Below are positions 56,301 to 63,762 of a stretch of DNA of 64,000 bases, piece by piece (the stretch's first letter is position 1; the number at the start of each line of letters is the position of its first letter). This stretch comes from Setoptus koraiensis. Lineage: Eukaryota > Animalia > Arthropoda. The stretch covers positions 21,886,001-21,950,000 of the forward strand of contig CM106586.1 in NCBI GenBank assembly GCA_048013815.1, written 5' to 3'. A program made the position numbers and the translations under genes. A model generated the notes under the pieces. That model ran no database searches, was not told the origin of the DNA, and saw nothing but the letters and a program-made list of their open reading frames with translations.

Positions 56301-58337
56301 TGCTGGTCACAACAACGGTCGTCATAATCGCAATCAGCACAATTGGCTGTCGCTGTTGGTGACTCGAGCGGCCATAACTTTGCCCACTTGCGATGCTGCT
56401 GATCTCGTTTAGAGCGCACTACATGAGCCTGCCACTTGATGATGATAATATTTCGCACTGGCCAACATGATATATATTACATATATTGGCTGCATGGCAA
56501 TATAAATCGGCAGCCATTTCGCGCTGCTGGGCTCAGCGCCGCCGCCGCCGCCGCCAGCAGCAACAACGACAGCAGCAACAACAACGACAGCAGCAACAAC
56601 AACGACAGCAGCAACAACAACAACAGCGACAGCAACAACAACAGCGACAGCAGCAACAACAGCAACAACAACAGCGACAGCAACAACAACAACAACGACG
56701 CCAACAACGGCTAACAGGCACAAGAATGTTGATTAACTCGACGCACTTGCACCGGTGTGTCATGATATGCACCACACGAGACCTGTTACTGTTGGCCGGC
56801 CTATCCAGAGATGCTAGTGATATGGACAAAAATGATCAATGATGATAAACTGCCGACCATTGTCTTGCGCTCGCAGTTATTCACCTGTCGTCGCCCTAAA
56901 TTAGTTGTGCGTTGTGCACAATCTGTTGTTTTTGCTTGTTGGCCGCTTGTTCGCTAATGCCATTGGCACTGTTATTGATGCTGTCGCTGTTGTTGTCTCG
57001 CCAGCAGCGGCCGTTGTCGCTGGCATTGGCGGTTGCAGCACGCGCACTGTTGTTGTTGTGTGTTGTTGTTGTTGTTGTGTGTTGTTGTTGTTGTTGTGTG
57101 TTGTTGTTGTTGTTGTTGTGTGTTGTTGTAGTTGTGTGCTGTTGTAGTTGTGTGCTGTTGTGCTGTTGGTGTCGGGTATTTGGAGCGACGCCGCCGCCGC
57201 CGCCGTTGTTGTTGTTGTCGTTGTCATAACTTGCCAGATGACTGATGGAGACCCGCAACGGCAACAGCACCGCCAACAACAGCGACACCGACAGCAACAA
57301 CAGCGACAGCAACAACGACAGCAGCAACATCAACAGAAGCAGCATGAACATGATGCAAATTAGTTTCGCATTTGCATCATGTCTCTGGTCGGCCGGCCGA
57401 CTGTTGCAAACTGTTGTTATTGGCCTGTCGCTAGTCGTTGGCCTCGCTCTCGTTGTCTCGTTGCTGTCGCTGCTCGCGCGCCCACAAACCTCCGCAACGG
57501 CCACAACAACAGCGACAACAACAACAACGACATGGACCCGCACATATTTCATGTTCATGTTGTTATTTAATAGATTTTATAGATAGCAGCAACACTTACC
57601 GCCACTCTTACGGCTTATAGGGCACAGCACATTTTACAACCTGTTTGATGGCGATGATGAAAATTGATCTCAGTTGGAGGTCGCGCACACACATTATATA
57701 TTACATGCTATGTACACGGCTCACCTGTGCCCTGGTTGCCTTACGACACTGCGTTACAGGTGAGACGGGCACCACTTGTGAGACTGCACCACTTGTGAGA
57801 CTGTATCCCTTATGAGACTGCATCACGGTGCGACTGCACCGTCATGGGCACGGTGCGCAGGTAGACGCAATGCCCGGCCGAATGATATAATTGATATAAT
57901 GGCGACCGCGATGACCAACATGCTAACCTAATGAACATAATAAACCTAATGAACGTAATGAATGCGGCCGGCCACCGGCTGCCAGTGTTGATTGGTTCCA
58001 TGTTGCATCAGCATTATTATTTATGTTGTTGTTGTTGCTCGCATGTTGCAATTGTGTCCGCTGTGATTTGACTTGATTTGATTTGTTGTTTTGTTCTGCT
58101 CTCCTCTACGTCTGCCGCTTTGTTTGCATATTTCAACGCCGTATCATATCTGCTGCACCGTTTATACGCCATCTCTGCACCGTTGGCCAGACGCATGCCG
58201 TGTCTCGCCGCCCGATTACACAAAACCAATTGGATCGCATCGCATGCATGCCTCCAGATCTAGATAACAATGGACCCACTCACAACACTGTCGCCATACC
58301 TGTCGGTGGCGCCGCCACACTTGCAACTCAACTATTT

Positions 58338-58369
<32 letters not shown>

Positions 58370-60841
58370 TACACACAATGCTAATGACCAGTATGGCGGC
58401 ATACTATCGTCATCAGTGCAATGTATGTACTCGGTGGATACAAATGGTGTAATTCAAACTCGATTCAATTGCGCCATCTAGTGTGCGGTGCCAGTTTCGC
58501 CAGGGTGACAGGTGGTGGTCTGGTTGTGCGATGAGATCAAGCGTCGGCCATTAGTGATCATTAGCGACTGCGAGCACCATCTATCTGTGACCGTCTGTTA
58601 CTGTTCGGATCAAAATCATTGCAACATGCTACTGGATAAATCTTACAACTTGCCACGCTCAATCAGAGCAAAACTGCAACCCAAAAACACGCTCACCCAC
58701 CAAAACTCAGCCTGAGTGTGTGTGTGTGTATCGAGCAAATGGCTAATTTAGTTAGTTGAGGGGCCCGGCGCGATCACGAGCAAACATCCGGCGCCAACTC
58801 GTAACCAGTTGGCCGGCACTGACAATCAAAACAATGAATCTGCAATGAGTTTCGTCGGCGACCATGAGTGCCGCCAGTCTCTCGTGATTGGCGACTCTTG
58901 GCGCTGGTCAACTGCAACGCGCCAACAAGGTTATAGGCCCACGAGTGGTCACTTCCTCTCCCTGTCTCTGTCTCTCGCCGCATATATATCCGCATGTATA
59001 TCCACATATATATCCACGGTATATATCTGGCGTCGGCCGGCGAACATGAGCTCAAAAACGCAAGTGTGCTGTCGGTTAAGTGATTGCCGGTCACTGGACA
59101 AATTAGATTGGTCGGTGCCGTCAACACATAGGCGTTGCGCACAGGAAGTGATCATCAGCGAATGAGTATCATCATCGTCGTCAATTTGTACACCACACAT
59201 TTGTATAATCACAGTACAGCGAAACACAATATAAATCATATCAACACGACCGTGATATCTCAGACATGGCCCAATACTGCCAATGTCCAAAATATACTGC
59301 TGTCGACACATAAACAACAACAACAGCAATTTGCCGGTATCAGGTAACCAATGGCACCAAGTGAGAGGCGGCCGACCAATTGAGGCTCGAGCGCTGTATC
59401 ATGACTCAGATCATCAATCATCACTTTGTGTTCATCATCAACTAATGAGTGCTGGTCACACAAACACAACGGTAGTAATAACAACAGCAACAGCAACAGT
59501 GACAACAACAATAGATAACCTAGACCACTAATCTTCTAATGTGATTATCATGGTCACTGCCACTATTTGAGCGTCGTCGCTTCCTTTGACCAAACGAGTT
59601 GCTGTAAAGCGCACAAAACCGAGAAAGAGGATCCCATACACTTGGACCAATCTGATGTGTCCAATTGTTCAATTTATTAGCTTCAACGGCAATAACACGC
59701 ACTGGAACATAGTGTCAAATAGTGGACACAAAGAGAGAATAGGCCCCATAAAACGTGTACCCTCAATGACCAACAACAACAATAACAACCACATGAAATT
59801 TGCCACCATATTATACACCATGATCGCCACCTGACACCACAGCCTAACACACAACATGACGAGCATGATGATGATGATGATGATGAAGCGAATCTGATGA
59901 CAAAGAGGTCGCCTTTGTCAATTAATAATAATAATGGTAATAGTAATAGTGATAATAGTGACGAACCAAAACGATAATATTCTGTGGTAAATAAATCATT
60001 TTTTCATCATACTTATATGTCCATTTATGTACTATATGTTTAGGTTCGCCACTCTATCACACTGTAACTCTTTGGGATAGATGGCATCATTACTCCATTG
60101 CTCCATTTATACATTTATCAAGTGTCTCTTGTGAGCGACACTCTTACTCTCTTGATTAATGGTTAACACACGAGTCTGTCAGTTATATTTCATTTCCTCT
60201 TGTCCGCATACATATCGACCCATAGCCAATGGTCAACCCCATGCACAAGCAATAGCCACGGTTGACCATTGCCCACTCATCATCACCACCATCGGACACC
60301 AAATCATCATTAGTGTTGATAATGATTCTCTTTTGCTCTGTGTGGAGATTTTAACAAGTTTAACAAGGTAACAAGCGGCAGCGTCAACAAACAACAAGCA
60401 TGAAGTAGCATCATTTTAATCCAATCAAGTAGCAATCATGACAAACGGTAGTAGCGATTTTGTATGTGCACCCATAATGATAACTGTTGGTTGTCTGATC
60501 GGTTTTTGATTATGGGATATCACCACTTCCACAACATTCATTGCTACTGGTGCTGCTGTAATCTATTGTCGATTATGTGACCAGGTTCAACTTGGTGAAG
60601 AAAATAAGAGGGTAGGGCGAACAAAGGCAGCGATGGAGTGTGGAGTGTTCTGATAATAATAATAATAATAGTAATAACAGTCTCCCTCTTTCCCTGCCTA
60701 TCCTCACTGGCAAGTTCGAGGTTGTGGGATGGGGCACAAAAGGGAGAGCTAACAGAGGCAGCGTTAGCTACAAAATGGCTTTGTGTGGACACACTGTCCG
60801 AAGGCTATAACCTCATTTAAGATAATGATGAGGCAATTTGT

Positions 60842-60866: not shown

Positions 60867-61340
60867 TTAGTTGGATGCTTTCTTGAAATCAATAATTGCT
60901 TCCTCACCAACGGCCGAAATAACGCTAACTACAACCGTGTTACTTTCTTTAGAAAATTCATCTTTGATTTTAGTGGCCAATTCTTGGTCATTGGGCAACT
61001 TCAAATCATCCCTAGTTTCGCCTTTCTCTGTCAACAATGTTACAAAACCATCATCACTTATGTCAATCAACTCGAGGTCGAAACGGGTTACTAGCGGCAC
61101 ATCAATGTTGTGTGTTGATGGACACAAATCTTCATACTTCTTACCATTAAATATGTCTATTCCTACTAAATGTACTTTAGCGTGACCGTGTTTACCTGTC
61201 TTAGAAGTGGACATTTCAACAATTTTGCATGGCTTCTGTTTGATCATGACGTAACCGTTTTTTCTCAAAGCCGAACATTGCATAGGATAGGTATGCGAAG
61301 CATTAGAGGCTGATCCTTGGAATTCAACTTCATCTTCCAT
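60867..61340 (-). CDS. eIF5A: Eukaryotic translation initiation factor 5A, intronless, 157 aa
   Basis: The ORF carries the invariant hypusination motif STSKTGKHGHAK, the N-terminal TYPMQCSALRKNGYV and the C-terminal DDLKLP...VGEEA. ATG start, TAA stop, AATAAA about 20 nt downstream. Confidence 0.98.
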   Translation of the reverse strand: MEDEVEFQGSASNASHTYPMQCSALRKNGYVMIKQKPCKIVEMSTSKTGKHGHAKVHLVGIDIFNGKKYEDLCPSTHNIDVPLVTRFDLELIDISDDGFVTLLTEKGETRDDLKLPNDQELATKIKDEFSKESNTVVVSVISAVGEEAIIDFKKASN

Positions 61341-61902
61341 TGTTTATTCTTTGTTTTTGTTGATTCGAGATTAAATATGATATATTGGTAAATAATGGGT
61401 CTAATGATGAAGGATTTTGATAATAATAGAATGTTGTCCGATGTCTAGCTAATAAATGGTCTTGGTCCTTAAGAGTATTTGTTTAGAAACGATACGAAGA
61501 TATTTATAATAATAATTTGCCGATTATCTAGAAAACTAAAGAAGCATTGGCAACTCATGACGGAAGTTTTTCACACCGACAAACAGTGCGCATGCTCTCT
61601 GACCTGGCTGGCGCCAAATTTGAAGCGATATTTTTTCTTTTTTTTTTATGAGAGATGCCTCTGTCATCGTTAGCTTTCACAAACAATGGAGAATTGTTTG
61701 CCGGGAATGCCCTCCAGTAAGAACCGCGACAACAACAACAACAACAAGTTACGACATGGGCACGCGTTCTCCAATCGCGCCCAAACACGAACGCGAAACA
61801 AAAAAATACTCATCCCATACATAGGACATCATCATTGCTCTCACCAAACAACATTTTCGATTAGAGAATTATTATATCGCTACTCCAAATATAAATTTTA
61901 AT
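61341..61902. promoter_or_regulatory. Divergent (bidirectional) promoter interval between eIF5A and MSH2
   Basis: Head-to-head ATGs separated by 562 bp of AT-rich sequence. No core motif assigned. Confidence 0.6.
61686..61901 (+). other. 71-aa ORF ending 1 nt before the MSH2 ATG; either a uORF or a frameshifted MSH2 N-terminal remnant
   Basis: ATG...AAA TTT TAA T ATG junction. Weak motif echoes of MSH2 domain I (GMP, HG...IxYxG, LLxR). Confidence 0.35.
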
Positions 61903-63762
61903 ATGGACACCTCCTTTGTGAGCAAAGAAAATCAAGCTGCTGCATCCTTCTACGACGCAGACTTGAGTGTCACCCTTGGTCCCCGGGAATGCTTCGAATT
62001 AGACTCTAGGGCCTCCAGAAGTTTAGACATTTTACCAGATCCGAAGCTACAGACAAGTAGGAAATATGCCTCCGTTTATTCGGTTCTCAATCAATGCCGC
62101 ACATTGTGCGGCCAAAAACTTCTCATGTACTGGATCAAGAGGCCATTGATTGATCGGGTCCGAATAGAGAAACGACAAAATATAGTACAGTACCTCATAG
62201 AAGATTCGGCTATCCGCCAATCTTGTCATGAAAATTTTCTCAGAAAGATGCCCGATCTACTAAAGATAGCCCATAACTTTGAAAAGCTAAAGGCCACCCT
62301 CACGGATATGGTCAAAGTGGACAGAGCACGCACAATGATGCTCAGCGTAATAGAACGACTGGAAGAAAACTCCGACAATCTACCAGTGGATGTTCAAGAG
62401 CTTTTGAACGCTATGAAAATATGCGTGAATAACCTGCAGAGTTTTTCCGAGCTTGTTGAGACCACCATCGATGCAGACAAGCTAGATCCAAACGGAAATT
62501 TTATGATCAAGTCAGACTTTGATGAGGATATAGCCAGAATATCAATTGAAATCAATGCCAAAGAAACCGAAGCCAAATCTATTCTGAAAAACGCCGCTAG
62601 AGATCTTGATCTAGAATATGATAAATCTATCAAACTAGAAACCGACCTATCGGTGGGATTCGCTCTTAAGGTCACCAGGAAGCAAGAGCAGGTATTAAGA
62701 GGAAGAGAAGATGATTATCACCCCCTGTCAAATGCAAAAAAAGATGGCGTCCGATTTACCTGCAAAGCATTGAGCCGCTTAAGCGATGACTATATAAATC
62801 TCCACAGAGAGTACAACAAAGCTTCCGAAGAAATCGTATTACAGATTCTCGAAACTGCTGCAGGTCACAAAGAACCAATCAGGAGTTTCGGTGTCACGGT
62901 GGCAATCTTGGATGTTTTCGTTTCTATGGCTGTCGTATCTTTCCAGAATGACTACGTTAGACCGAAAATTTTAGACAAAGGCGCTGGAAAAATAGTGATT
63001 GAAAGAATGAGACATCCCTGTCTAGAGAATCAACCAGATATAGAAAATTTTGTAGCTAACGATATCATGTTCAACAAAGACGATAAGAAATTCTTCATTA
63101 TCACCGGCCCCAACATGGGTGGGAAATCGACCTTCATAAAGTCGGTGGCGGTTTGTGTGCTCATGGCACAACTAGGTTGCCATGTGCCAGCCAAAGAAGC
63201 CGAGATATCCATAGTGGACAGTATACTAACACGAATTGGAGCGGGTGATAGACAGCTACAGGGTATTTCTACTTTTATGGACGAAATGTTGGATATGGCC
63301 GAAATACTCAAGAATGCAACAAGTGATTCCCTTGTGATAATAGACGAGCTGGGCAGAGGTACTTCTACTTTCGAGGGTTTCGGTTTGGCTTGGAGTATAT
63401 CAGAGCGTTTGGCCAAAGAGATCAATAGTTACACTTTGTTTGCCACTCATTTTCACGAGTTGACAGAACTGGAGAACGAGATAAAGTCGGTAGGTAATTT
63501 GAACATATTGGCTCATTGTGACCAGGACAAGCTAGTGATGTTGTATTCAGTTGAACCGGGTGTCTGCAAAGAAAGTTACGGTATCAACGTGGCCAAATAT
63601 ACTAACTTCCCAGAGCATGTTGTTAACGCCGCTCAAGAAAAGCTACAACAGTTTGAGGAGATAGCGGGTTTCAAGTCGAAGGAGGATGTACGAAGTTGCG
63701 TAAAGAGGATCGCCAAGATGCATCTAGAGAAACAGGAACAGGTTAGCGCGAAAGTCATTTAG
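61903..63762 (+). CDS. MSH2: MutS homolog 2 (mismatch repair), single 619-aa ORF; N-terminal domains I-II largely absent
   Basis: Walker A ITGPNMGGKST, DELGRGTSTFEGFGLAWSISE, FATHFHELT, and lever-domain LD..A...L..L / LNQCRT..GQ.LL..WIK.PL are all MSH2-type. The true start or upstream exons are unresolved; the frame is open back to 61,825. Confidence 0.95.
   Translation: MDTSFVSKENQAAASFYDADLSVTLGPRECFELDSRASRSLDILPDPKLQTSRKYASVYSVLNQCRTLCGQKLLMYWIKRPLIDRVRIEKRQNIVQYLIEDSAIRQSCHENFLRKMPDLLKIAHNFEKLKATLTDMVKVDRARTMMLSVIERLEENSDNLPVDVQELLNAMKICVNNLQSFSELVETTIDADKLDPNGNFMIKSDFDEDIARISIEINAKETEAKSILKNAARDLDLEYDKSIKLETDLSVGFALKVTRKQEQVLRGREDDYHPLSNAKKDGVRFTCKALSRLSDDYINLHREYNKASEEIVLQILETAAGHKEPIRSFGVTVAILDVFVSMAVVSFQNDYVRPKILDKGAGKIVIERMRHPCLENQPDIENFVANDIMFNKDDKKFFIITGPNMGGKSTFIKSVAVCVLMAQLGCHVPAKEAEISIVDSILTRIGAGDRQLQGISTFMDEMLDMAEILKNATSDSLVIIDELGRGTSTFEGFGLAWSISERLAKEINSYTLFATHFHELTELENEIKSVGNLNILAHCDQDKLVMLYSVEPGVCKESYGINVAKYTNFPEHVVNAAQEKLQQFEEIAGFKSKEDVRSCVKRIAKMHLEKQEQVSAKVI

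Follow-up and report, generated by a model that had tools for sequence, protein, structure and literature searches.

MSH2 is the subunit common to both eukaryotic mismatch-recognition complexes, and in one of them, MutS-alpha, the mispair is contacted by MSH6 only. In yeast, Msh2-Msh3 depends on domain I of Msh2 far more than Msh2-Msh6 does; the latter complex is reportedly insulated from defects in Msh2 domain I, and the requirement of Msh2-Msh3 is said to differ. Forms of the protein family lacking this domain are known. MSH4 and MSH5, which constitute MutS-gamma, are naturally without domain I and act as clamps that do not recognize mismatches, bacterial MutS2 has core, clamp and ATPase without domains I and II, and yeast msh2 alleles deleted for domain I have been engineered. 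Here we describe an MSH2 gene of the mite Setoptus koraiensis, located at positions 61903-63762 of a 64,000-nucleotide stretch of genomic DNA (hereafter the window; contig CM106586.1 of assembly GCA_048013815.1, positions 21,886,001 to 21,950,000 of the forward strand), and compare it with these systems.

The open reading frame (ORF) at this position clearly encodes an orthologue of MSH2, of which only domains III, IV and V remain. The features of the gene, in window coordinates, are as follows.

61903-63762, plus strand: complete, intronless coding sequence of the short MSH2, a single unbroken frame of 619 amino acids (aa) plus TAA, with the ATG start of the ORF list
61822-61824, plus strand: nearest in-frame stop codon (TAG) 5′ of the ATG, 26 codons away, read from the sequence
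61903-61998, plus strand: residues 1-32, the initiator Met and the remnant of the connector's last helix and linker strand (roughly human 256-302; alignment with full-length MSH2 and AlphaFold2 model)
62014-62931, plus strand: MutS domain III (core/lever), residues 38-343 (Pfam PF05192, E 2.1e-26)
62515-62808, plus strand: MutS domain IV (clamp), residues 205-302, inserted within domain III (Pfam PF05190, E 3e-10)
63097-63657, plus strand: MutS domain V (ABC ATPase), residues 399-585 (PF00488, E 3.5e-79, profile positions 2-188 of 188)
63106-63132, plus strand: Walker A, GPNMGGKST, residues 402-410 (alignment)
63343-63366, plus strand: Walker B, DELGRGTS, residues 481-488 (alignment)
63658-63759, plus strand: short C-terminal helical tail, residues 586-619 (the human alignment stops at 877 of 934; helices predicted)

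In a phmmer search against PDB, mite residues 29-610 were colinear with residues 298-877 of human MSH2 (E 1.5e-147, 495.8 bits), with scores of 232 bits for Taq MutS, 219 for MSH3, 187 for MSH6 and 105.6 for MutS2. Approximately 28-32 residues stand ahead of the L-D...A...L start of domain III, in agreement with the figure of 32 given in the original prediction. Moreover, Pfam assigned MutS_III, MutS_IV and MutS_V only, and neither MutS_I (PF01624) nor MutS_II (PF05188) was detected in the 619 aa, which bears out the earlier proposal that the mismatch-binding and connector domains are missing. The ATPase motifs, already described as intact, are so: Walker A, Walker B and the FATHFHEL loop do not vary among the 63 sequences aligned, and the alignment to human MSH2 shows that the helix-turn-helix following domain V (FPEHVV...A..KL..FEE) is retained as well. 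A word-based search of 5.8 billion proteins was carried out with the mite sequence, and the best 120 matches were considered. The named ones among them were all MSH2, with 42-47% identity and 89-97% query coverage (63% for a partial Porites entry), and in a maximum-likelihood tree the mite protein nests among animal MSH2. Judged from the names of these best 120 matches, without direct comparison to MSH4 or MSH5, it is not a member of either of these families; in addition, no Smr domain was found by Pfam, and the MutS2 score given above does not place it in MutS2.

When compared to canonical MSH2 (human, 934 aa; PDB 2O8B and 8AG6, chain A), the mite protein is thus orthologous, with 41-47% identity over domains III-V, and has the same lever, clamp, ATPase and helix-turn-helix fold with both Walker motifs intact, but it has no equivalents of about human residues 1-265, which comprise the whole of domain I and almost the entire connector (domain II). 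The yeast domain I deletion alleles resemble it in having an Msh2 devoid of domain I; however, they are engineered and keep the connector, whereas the mite protein is natural and has lost it too. The interpretation in the original prediction, argued from yeast Msh2 domain I, understated the loss in this respect. Similarly, MSH4 and MSH5 are eukaryotic MutS homologues without domain I, as is the mite protein, but they retain domain II, and by the match names the mite sequence is an MSH2. Bacterial MutS2 likewise has core, clamp and ATPase without domains I and II, but carries an Smr endonuclease domain that the mite protein does not have, and the mite protein matches it with 105.6 bits, as opposed to 495.8 for human MSH2.

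We then focused on the residues preceding domain III, which correspond to the end of the connector. In the alignment with full-length MSH2, mite residues ~10-32 lie opposite the connector's last helix and linker (...AALAAVIKYLE...TFDLxQYMxL), with NQAAASF opposite AALAAVIKY and TLGPRECFEL opposite TFDLxQYMxL. The consensus of the short family, TLDxxxYFxL, aligns to the same TFDLxQYMxL segment just ahead of domain III (about human 294-303), which puts the start of the mite protein opposite about human residue 256-270. This start lies near what we take to be the exon 4/5 junction of human MSH2 (codon 264/265), which would fit a loss of 5′ exons. On the other hand, the suggestion that LGPREC, within the same segment, is a relic of the connector motif LGPKEC (~residue 190) had to be rejected: the closest relative, 83% identical, reads TVDPEHC at that place, so the resemblance is coincidental, and the family consensus does not sustain it either. 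An AlphaFold2 monomer model built on a 63-sequence alignment (predicted local distance difference test, pLDDT, 86.9; predicted template modelling score, pTM, 0.83) places a helix at residues 8-24 (pLDDT 81-89) and C-terminal helices at 571-585 and 593-618, and its best Foldseek matches are the human MSH2 chains in MutS-alpha and MutS-beta structures (query template modelling score, TMq, 0.72-0.76). Regarding the C-terminal tail, which the original prediction had noted to be short, it does stop early, at a point opposite human residue ~880-885 that leaves out the last ~50 residues or so of the human protein. This is not a special feature of the mite protein, as tick MSH2 proteins (859-861 aa) terminate at about the same point.

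The short form was also found in other organisms. Forty-five database relatives of 605-670 aa, containing domains III, IV and V only, all rank above any full-length MSH2, and one of them is an entry of the eriophyoid mite Aceria tosichella (UniRef A0A6G1SEJ7, 'DNA mismatch repair protein Msh2'). A transcriptome assembly exists for that species (Gupta et al. 2019, cited in PMC7738191), and we infer that the entry was derived from it. All 46 short proteins fall into a single clade of the maximum-likelihood tree (Shimodaira-Hasegawa-like approximate likelihood ratio test, SH-aLRT, 100), and the long stem branch of this clade measures 1.08 changes per column. Setoptus MSH2 and the database protein P0001, which are 83-84% identical, are sister to the other 44, Aceria tosichella included; because of this topology, the truncation is older than the deepest sampled split. 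The tree thus places the loss of the MSH2 N-terminus in the ancestor of the sampled clade at the latest.

The start codon is shared too. In an alignment of 42 short proteins, 39 begin with Met in the column of the Setoptus Met, 36-45 residues ahead of the invariant L41 of the L-D-x-x-P motif, and of the three exceptions, one is shifted by the alignment and two are longer ORF calls, with that Met still present in at least one of the two. In-frame stop codons lie 3-60 codons 5′ of this Met in eight species (Setoptus and seven relatives), the shortest distance being the 3 codons of contig L007, from the closest relative, and a purine occupies position -3 in all five species checked. The genes upstream are not the same between species: the head-to-head arrangement of eIF5A and MSH2 is common to Setoptus and L007 only, an unknown ORF and a PAX gene precede the short MSH2 in contigs L003 to L005, and Rab11-FIP3 does so in L010, with the start unchanged. 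These differences indicate that the short gene has moved or that its surroundings have been reshuffled. Seen across these relatives, the short MSH2 form is not an annotation artefact of the Setoptus locus. Entries named 'Msh2-like' with domains III-V only also exist for the molluscs Ylistrum balloti (P0061, 666 aa) and Ruditapes philippinarum (P0067, 634 aa). As the close relatives of these two are full-length, they are probably partial gene models, and they illustrate that a short annotation by itself is no proof.

To evaluate selection, the ratio of nonsynonymous to synonymous substitution rates (dN/dS) was computed for Setoptus MSH2 against its L007 orthologue. With a dS of 0.98, dN/dS was 0.09 overall. 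The ATPase domain had a value of 0.054 and domains III/IV one of 0.10, whereas codons 1-32, less constrained than the remainder, reached 0.38. These values indicate that the short mite MSH2 is under strong purifying selection, and the low dN/dS, together with the invariant Walker A, Walker B and FATHFHEL motifs, points to a working protein and not to a relic. With such a large portion of the protein missing, a decaying pseudogene fragment might be thought of; however, the intact ORF in about 45 sequences, the invariant catalytic motifs and the low dN/dS refute this explanation, to which we assign a negligible probability. Altogether, the 45 relatives, their single clade, the shared Met and the dN/dS value agree with the naturally minimized MSH2 that had been proposed, as far as truncation is concerned, and support a truncation that is natural, ancient and maintained by selection.

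It was then considered whether the N-terminal part is encoded elsewhere. A profile hidden Markov model of MSH2 residues 1-300 was built from 61 full-length MSH2 proteins, with ticks left out of training, and as a positive control two tick MSH2 proteins scored 369-386 bits. This profile found nothing in the six-frame translation of the 64-kb window, which covers 62 kb upstream on both strands and includes the region beyond eIF5A where a check had been proposed, nor in contigs L001 to L007 (best E = 15 over the window and these contigs) or L008 to L010 (best E = 2.6), and no MutS I/II signal was found in the 7.8-10 kb lying 5′ of the short MSH2 in other species. As domains III-IV are still readily recognized, and as tick MSH2 N-termini share 45-53% identity with those of other phyla, a degree of conservation similar to that of the rest of the protein, a retained N-terminal part should be visible. 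When tblastn was run with 40 N-termini, a weak match appeared at 15194-14889 on the minus strand of the window (E 0.026-0.56; E = 24 with the profile, over ~20 positions). It lies in a GC-rich stretch with ORFs in all frames, and was thus treated as multiple-testing noise and rejected as N-terminal MSH2. In addition, Joint Genome Institute (JGI) metagenomes were scanned for patterns taken from the N-terminal alignment. Of the 7 loci obtained, none came from the two metagenomes with mite contigs, a weak negative in that two exact peptide patterns were required. Contig L008, a 2258-nt Logan contig, was considered as a possible mRNA; it has no poly(A) tail that would mark it as one.

These results bear directly on the possibility that the gene model is incomplete, with domains I-II encoded in further 5′ exons, or in a separate gene whose product assembles with MSH2 (a split MSH2). 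Introns at the 5′ end are preferentially kept in eriophyoids (PMC7738191), AG dinucleotides are present between the upstream stop codon and the ATG, and a single window of the genome was read. Nevertheless, we consider this explanation very unlikely, since no MutS I/II signal is seen on either strand upstream or in the other species, divergence alone would not mask an N-terminal part when domains III-IV are so readily detected, and the aligned Met is conserved family-wide. Furthermore, close relatives do not align with one another directly 5′ of the ATG, the L007 stop codon sits immediately upstream, and the mite-bearing JGI metagenomes yielded no N-terminal locus, weak as that pattern-based result is.

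That the short gene is a truncated extra copy, with an ordinary full-length MSH2 at another locus, has, in our view, only a slim chance of being the explanation. Truncated paralogues of repair genes do occur, and the one window read leaves room for another copy. However, the short form is the sole MSH2-like protein for Aceria tosichella and for all mite contigs in both protein searches, made with the short MSH2 and with the tick N-terminus as queries, and neither returned a mite-like full-length MSH2. The unnamed full-length matches share 70-99% identity with proteins of molluscs, echinoderms or ticks, with the exception of P0063, which comes from unrelated samples. In the word-based search with the tick N-terminus, no acariform or eriophyoid full-length MSH2 was found, though only 148 proteins passed and the result says little on other Acariformes. 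Moreover, a clade-wide dN/dS of 0.09 is not expected of a redundant copy. At the level of sequence comparison, the ~265 N-terminal residues that make up domain I and almost the whole connector are confirmed to be truly absent.

Regarding the surroundings of the gene, the following features were identified in the window and in the contigs of relatives.

60867-61340, minus strand: eIF5A gene, 157 aa, divergent neighbour (Pfam PF21485, IF5A-like_N, and PF01287, eIF-5a)
61341-61902, no strand: head-to-head eIF5A/MSH2 intergenic region, 562 bp, no MutS-like coding potential (N-terminal profile, six frames)
61442-61620, no strand: conserved non-coding block, 179 bp, 91.6% identical to L007 1838-2016
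L007, 1247-4224: MSH2 neighbourhood
L003, 6169-11875: MSH2 neighbourhood
L010, 3090-9698: MSH2 neighbourhood

The distance of 562 bp between the start codons of MSH2 and eIF5A is as originally reported. Within it, the 179-bp block stands out: the flanks aligned around it are 30-50% identical between Setoptus and L007, the ATG-proximal stretch at 61623-61902 is only 30-70% identical, and dS in genes is about 1, so that synonymous sites are almost saturated. The block contains CGGAAGT, GCGCATGC and a minus-strand CCAAT, which we take to be ETS, NRF1 and NF-Y sites, respectively, and from this motif content the two genes probably share the block as a bidirectional promoter of housekeeping type. 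Two other identities, an upstream exon of MSH2 and a structured RNA, were rejected, for the block has no coding signal, no Rfam match and fold z-scores near 0 (0.09 and 0.47).

Further upstream, window positions 1-56000 form a ~56-kb expanse at 52-61% guanine plus cytosine (GC), with overlapping ORFs in every frame and an AT-rich dip at 36-40 kb; no recognizable domain was found by Pfam in its long ORFs, of which the ten longest were scanned. This expanse adjoins genes at about 37-43% GC, which is unusual beside such compact genes. At 56896-57558 on the minus strand, a 220-aa ORF weakly matches PF02932, the transmembrane region of neurotransmitter-gated ion channels, below the gathering score (E 8.6e-4, 20.1 bits, cut-off 28.1), and could belong to a Cys-loop receptor gene as one of its exons. 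A low-complexity region (58000-60800) separates the GC-rich expanse from the eIF5A/MSH2 pair; its ORFs carry many poly-N, poly-Q and poly-T runs, and its GC content is intermediate.

Concerning function, the explanation that we find likely is that the ancestor of the clade lost domain I and nearly all of domain II, and that the remnant still works as the non-recognizing subunit of a MutS heterodimer. The common ancestor of the mite clade containing Aceria tosichella lost the corresponding coding sequence, probably either through loss of 5′ exons or through replacement of the gene by a 5′-truncated retrocopy, in a lineage shedding most of its introns. The eriophyoid Aculops lycopersici has no introns in 83.7% of its genes and a median intron of 170 bp, and intron loss mediated by reverse transcriptase has been invoked (PMC7738191); such extreme intron loss may offer a route by which a 5′-truncated copy could replace the ancestral gene. 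The remaining protein, of 605-632 aa, starts in the last connector helix and keeps the lever, the clamp, the ABC-ATPase and the helix-turn-helix. It would probably still close the clamp and cycle ATP, and its partner, presumably MSH6, would provide every mismatch contact.

The loss of the connector has further implications. In yeast, the Msh2 connector is described as the only MutS-homologue connector that contacts Mlh1-Pms1 (PMC9639671), and a second MutL interface is ascribed to the Msh6 ATPase/core in the study of DuPrie et al. In these mites, the canonical interface between the Msh2 connector and Mlh1 would be gone, in which case recruitment of the MutL homologues must be rewired, or else weakened. 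The simplest rewiring would be a mirror-image docking onto the partner's connector and the core/ATPase of MSH2, making use of a symmetry that is kept by bacteria and abandoned by yeast and human MutS-alpha. As the connector is lost as well, an otherwise ordinary MutS-alpha that simply does without a dispensable domain is unlikely to account for everything; an MSH2 that is either restricted to MutS-alpha or weakened, as the original prediction had it, is plausible. We propose, only tentatively and with less than even confidence, that MutS-to-MutL hand-over has been re-engineered throughout this mite lineage, which seems to be that of the eriophyoids, through mirror-image MLH1 docking, or that mismatch repair is attenuated.

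It is also conceivable, but in our opinion unlikely, that the same truncated protein has taken another job, mismatch repair being lost or crippled and the lever-clamp-ATPase core being kept for a role independent of it, e.g., by serving recombination or damage signalling as a sliding clamp, like MSH4-MSH5. The loss of the connector, the only one known to bind Mlh1 according to PMC9639671, would fit such a change, as would the very long stem branch following the truncation and the generally fast evolution of mite sequences. However, the ATPase and clamp residues are conserved as in functional MSH2, and the regional dN/dS values of 0.05-0.10 imply a strong functional constraint, although they are mute on which function is constrained.

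Several points weigh against a retained subunit of a MutS heterodimer, which nonetheless remains our preferred explanation. The heterodimer partner and the rewiring of MutL recruitment are purely inferred. The database relatives are ORF calls from contigs, which are unable to reveal splicing, and the preferential retention of 5′ introns in eriophyoids (PMC7738191) has to be kept in mind in this respect. Likewise, with one 64-kb window read, a separate gene for domains I-II, a full-length paralogue elsewhere and a further 5′ exon each keep some small probability.

MSH genes and mismatch repair are unmentioned in two eriophyoid genome papers (PMC7738191 and bioRxiv 10.64898/2026.08.24.746826), and the one paper found to name MSH2 alongside eriophyoids gives only an identifier for the MSH2 of T. 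urticae, tetur32g02030 (PMC13571142). Judged by comparative sequence evidence alone, the surprising domain architecture of the short mite MSH2 is real. A natural, connector-less MSH2 under strong purifying selection can be read as a test, set by evolution, of MutL recruitment and of which MutS-alpha parts cannot be dispensed with. Moreover, the short MSH2 offers a molecular lead on the raised evolutionary rate of these mites and on the streamlining of DNA-repair proteins at the level of domains. Attenuated mismatch repair, if true, would help to account for the very rapid evolution of their sequences and the extreme streamlining of their genomes.

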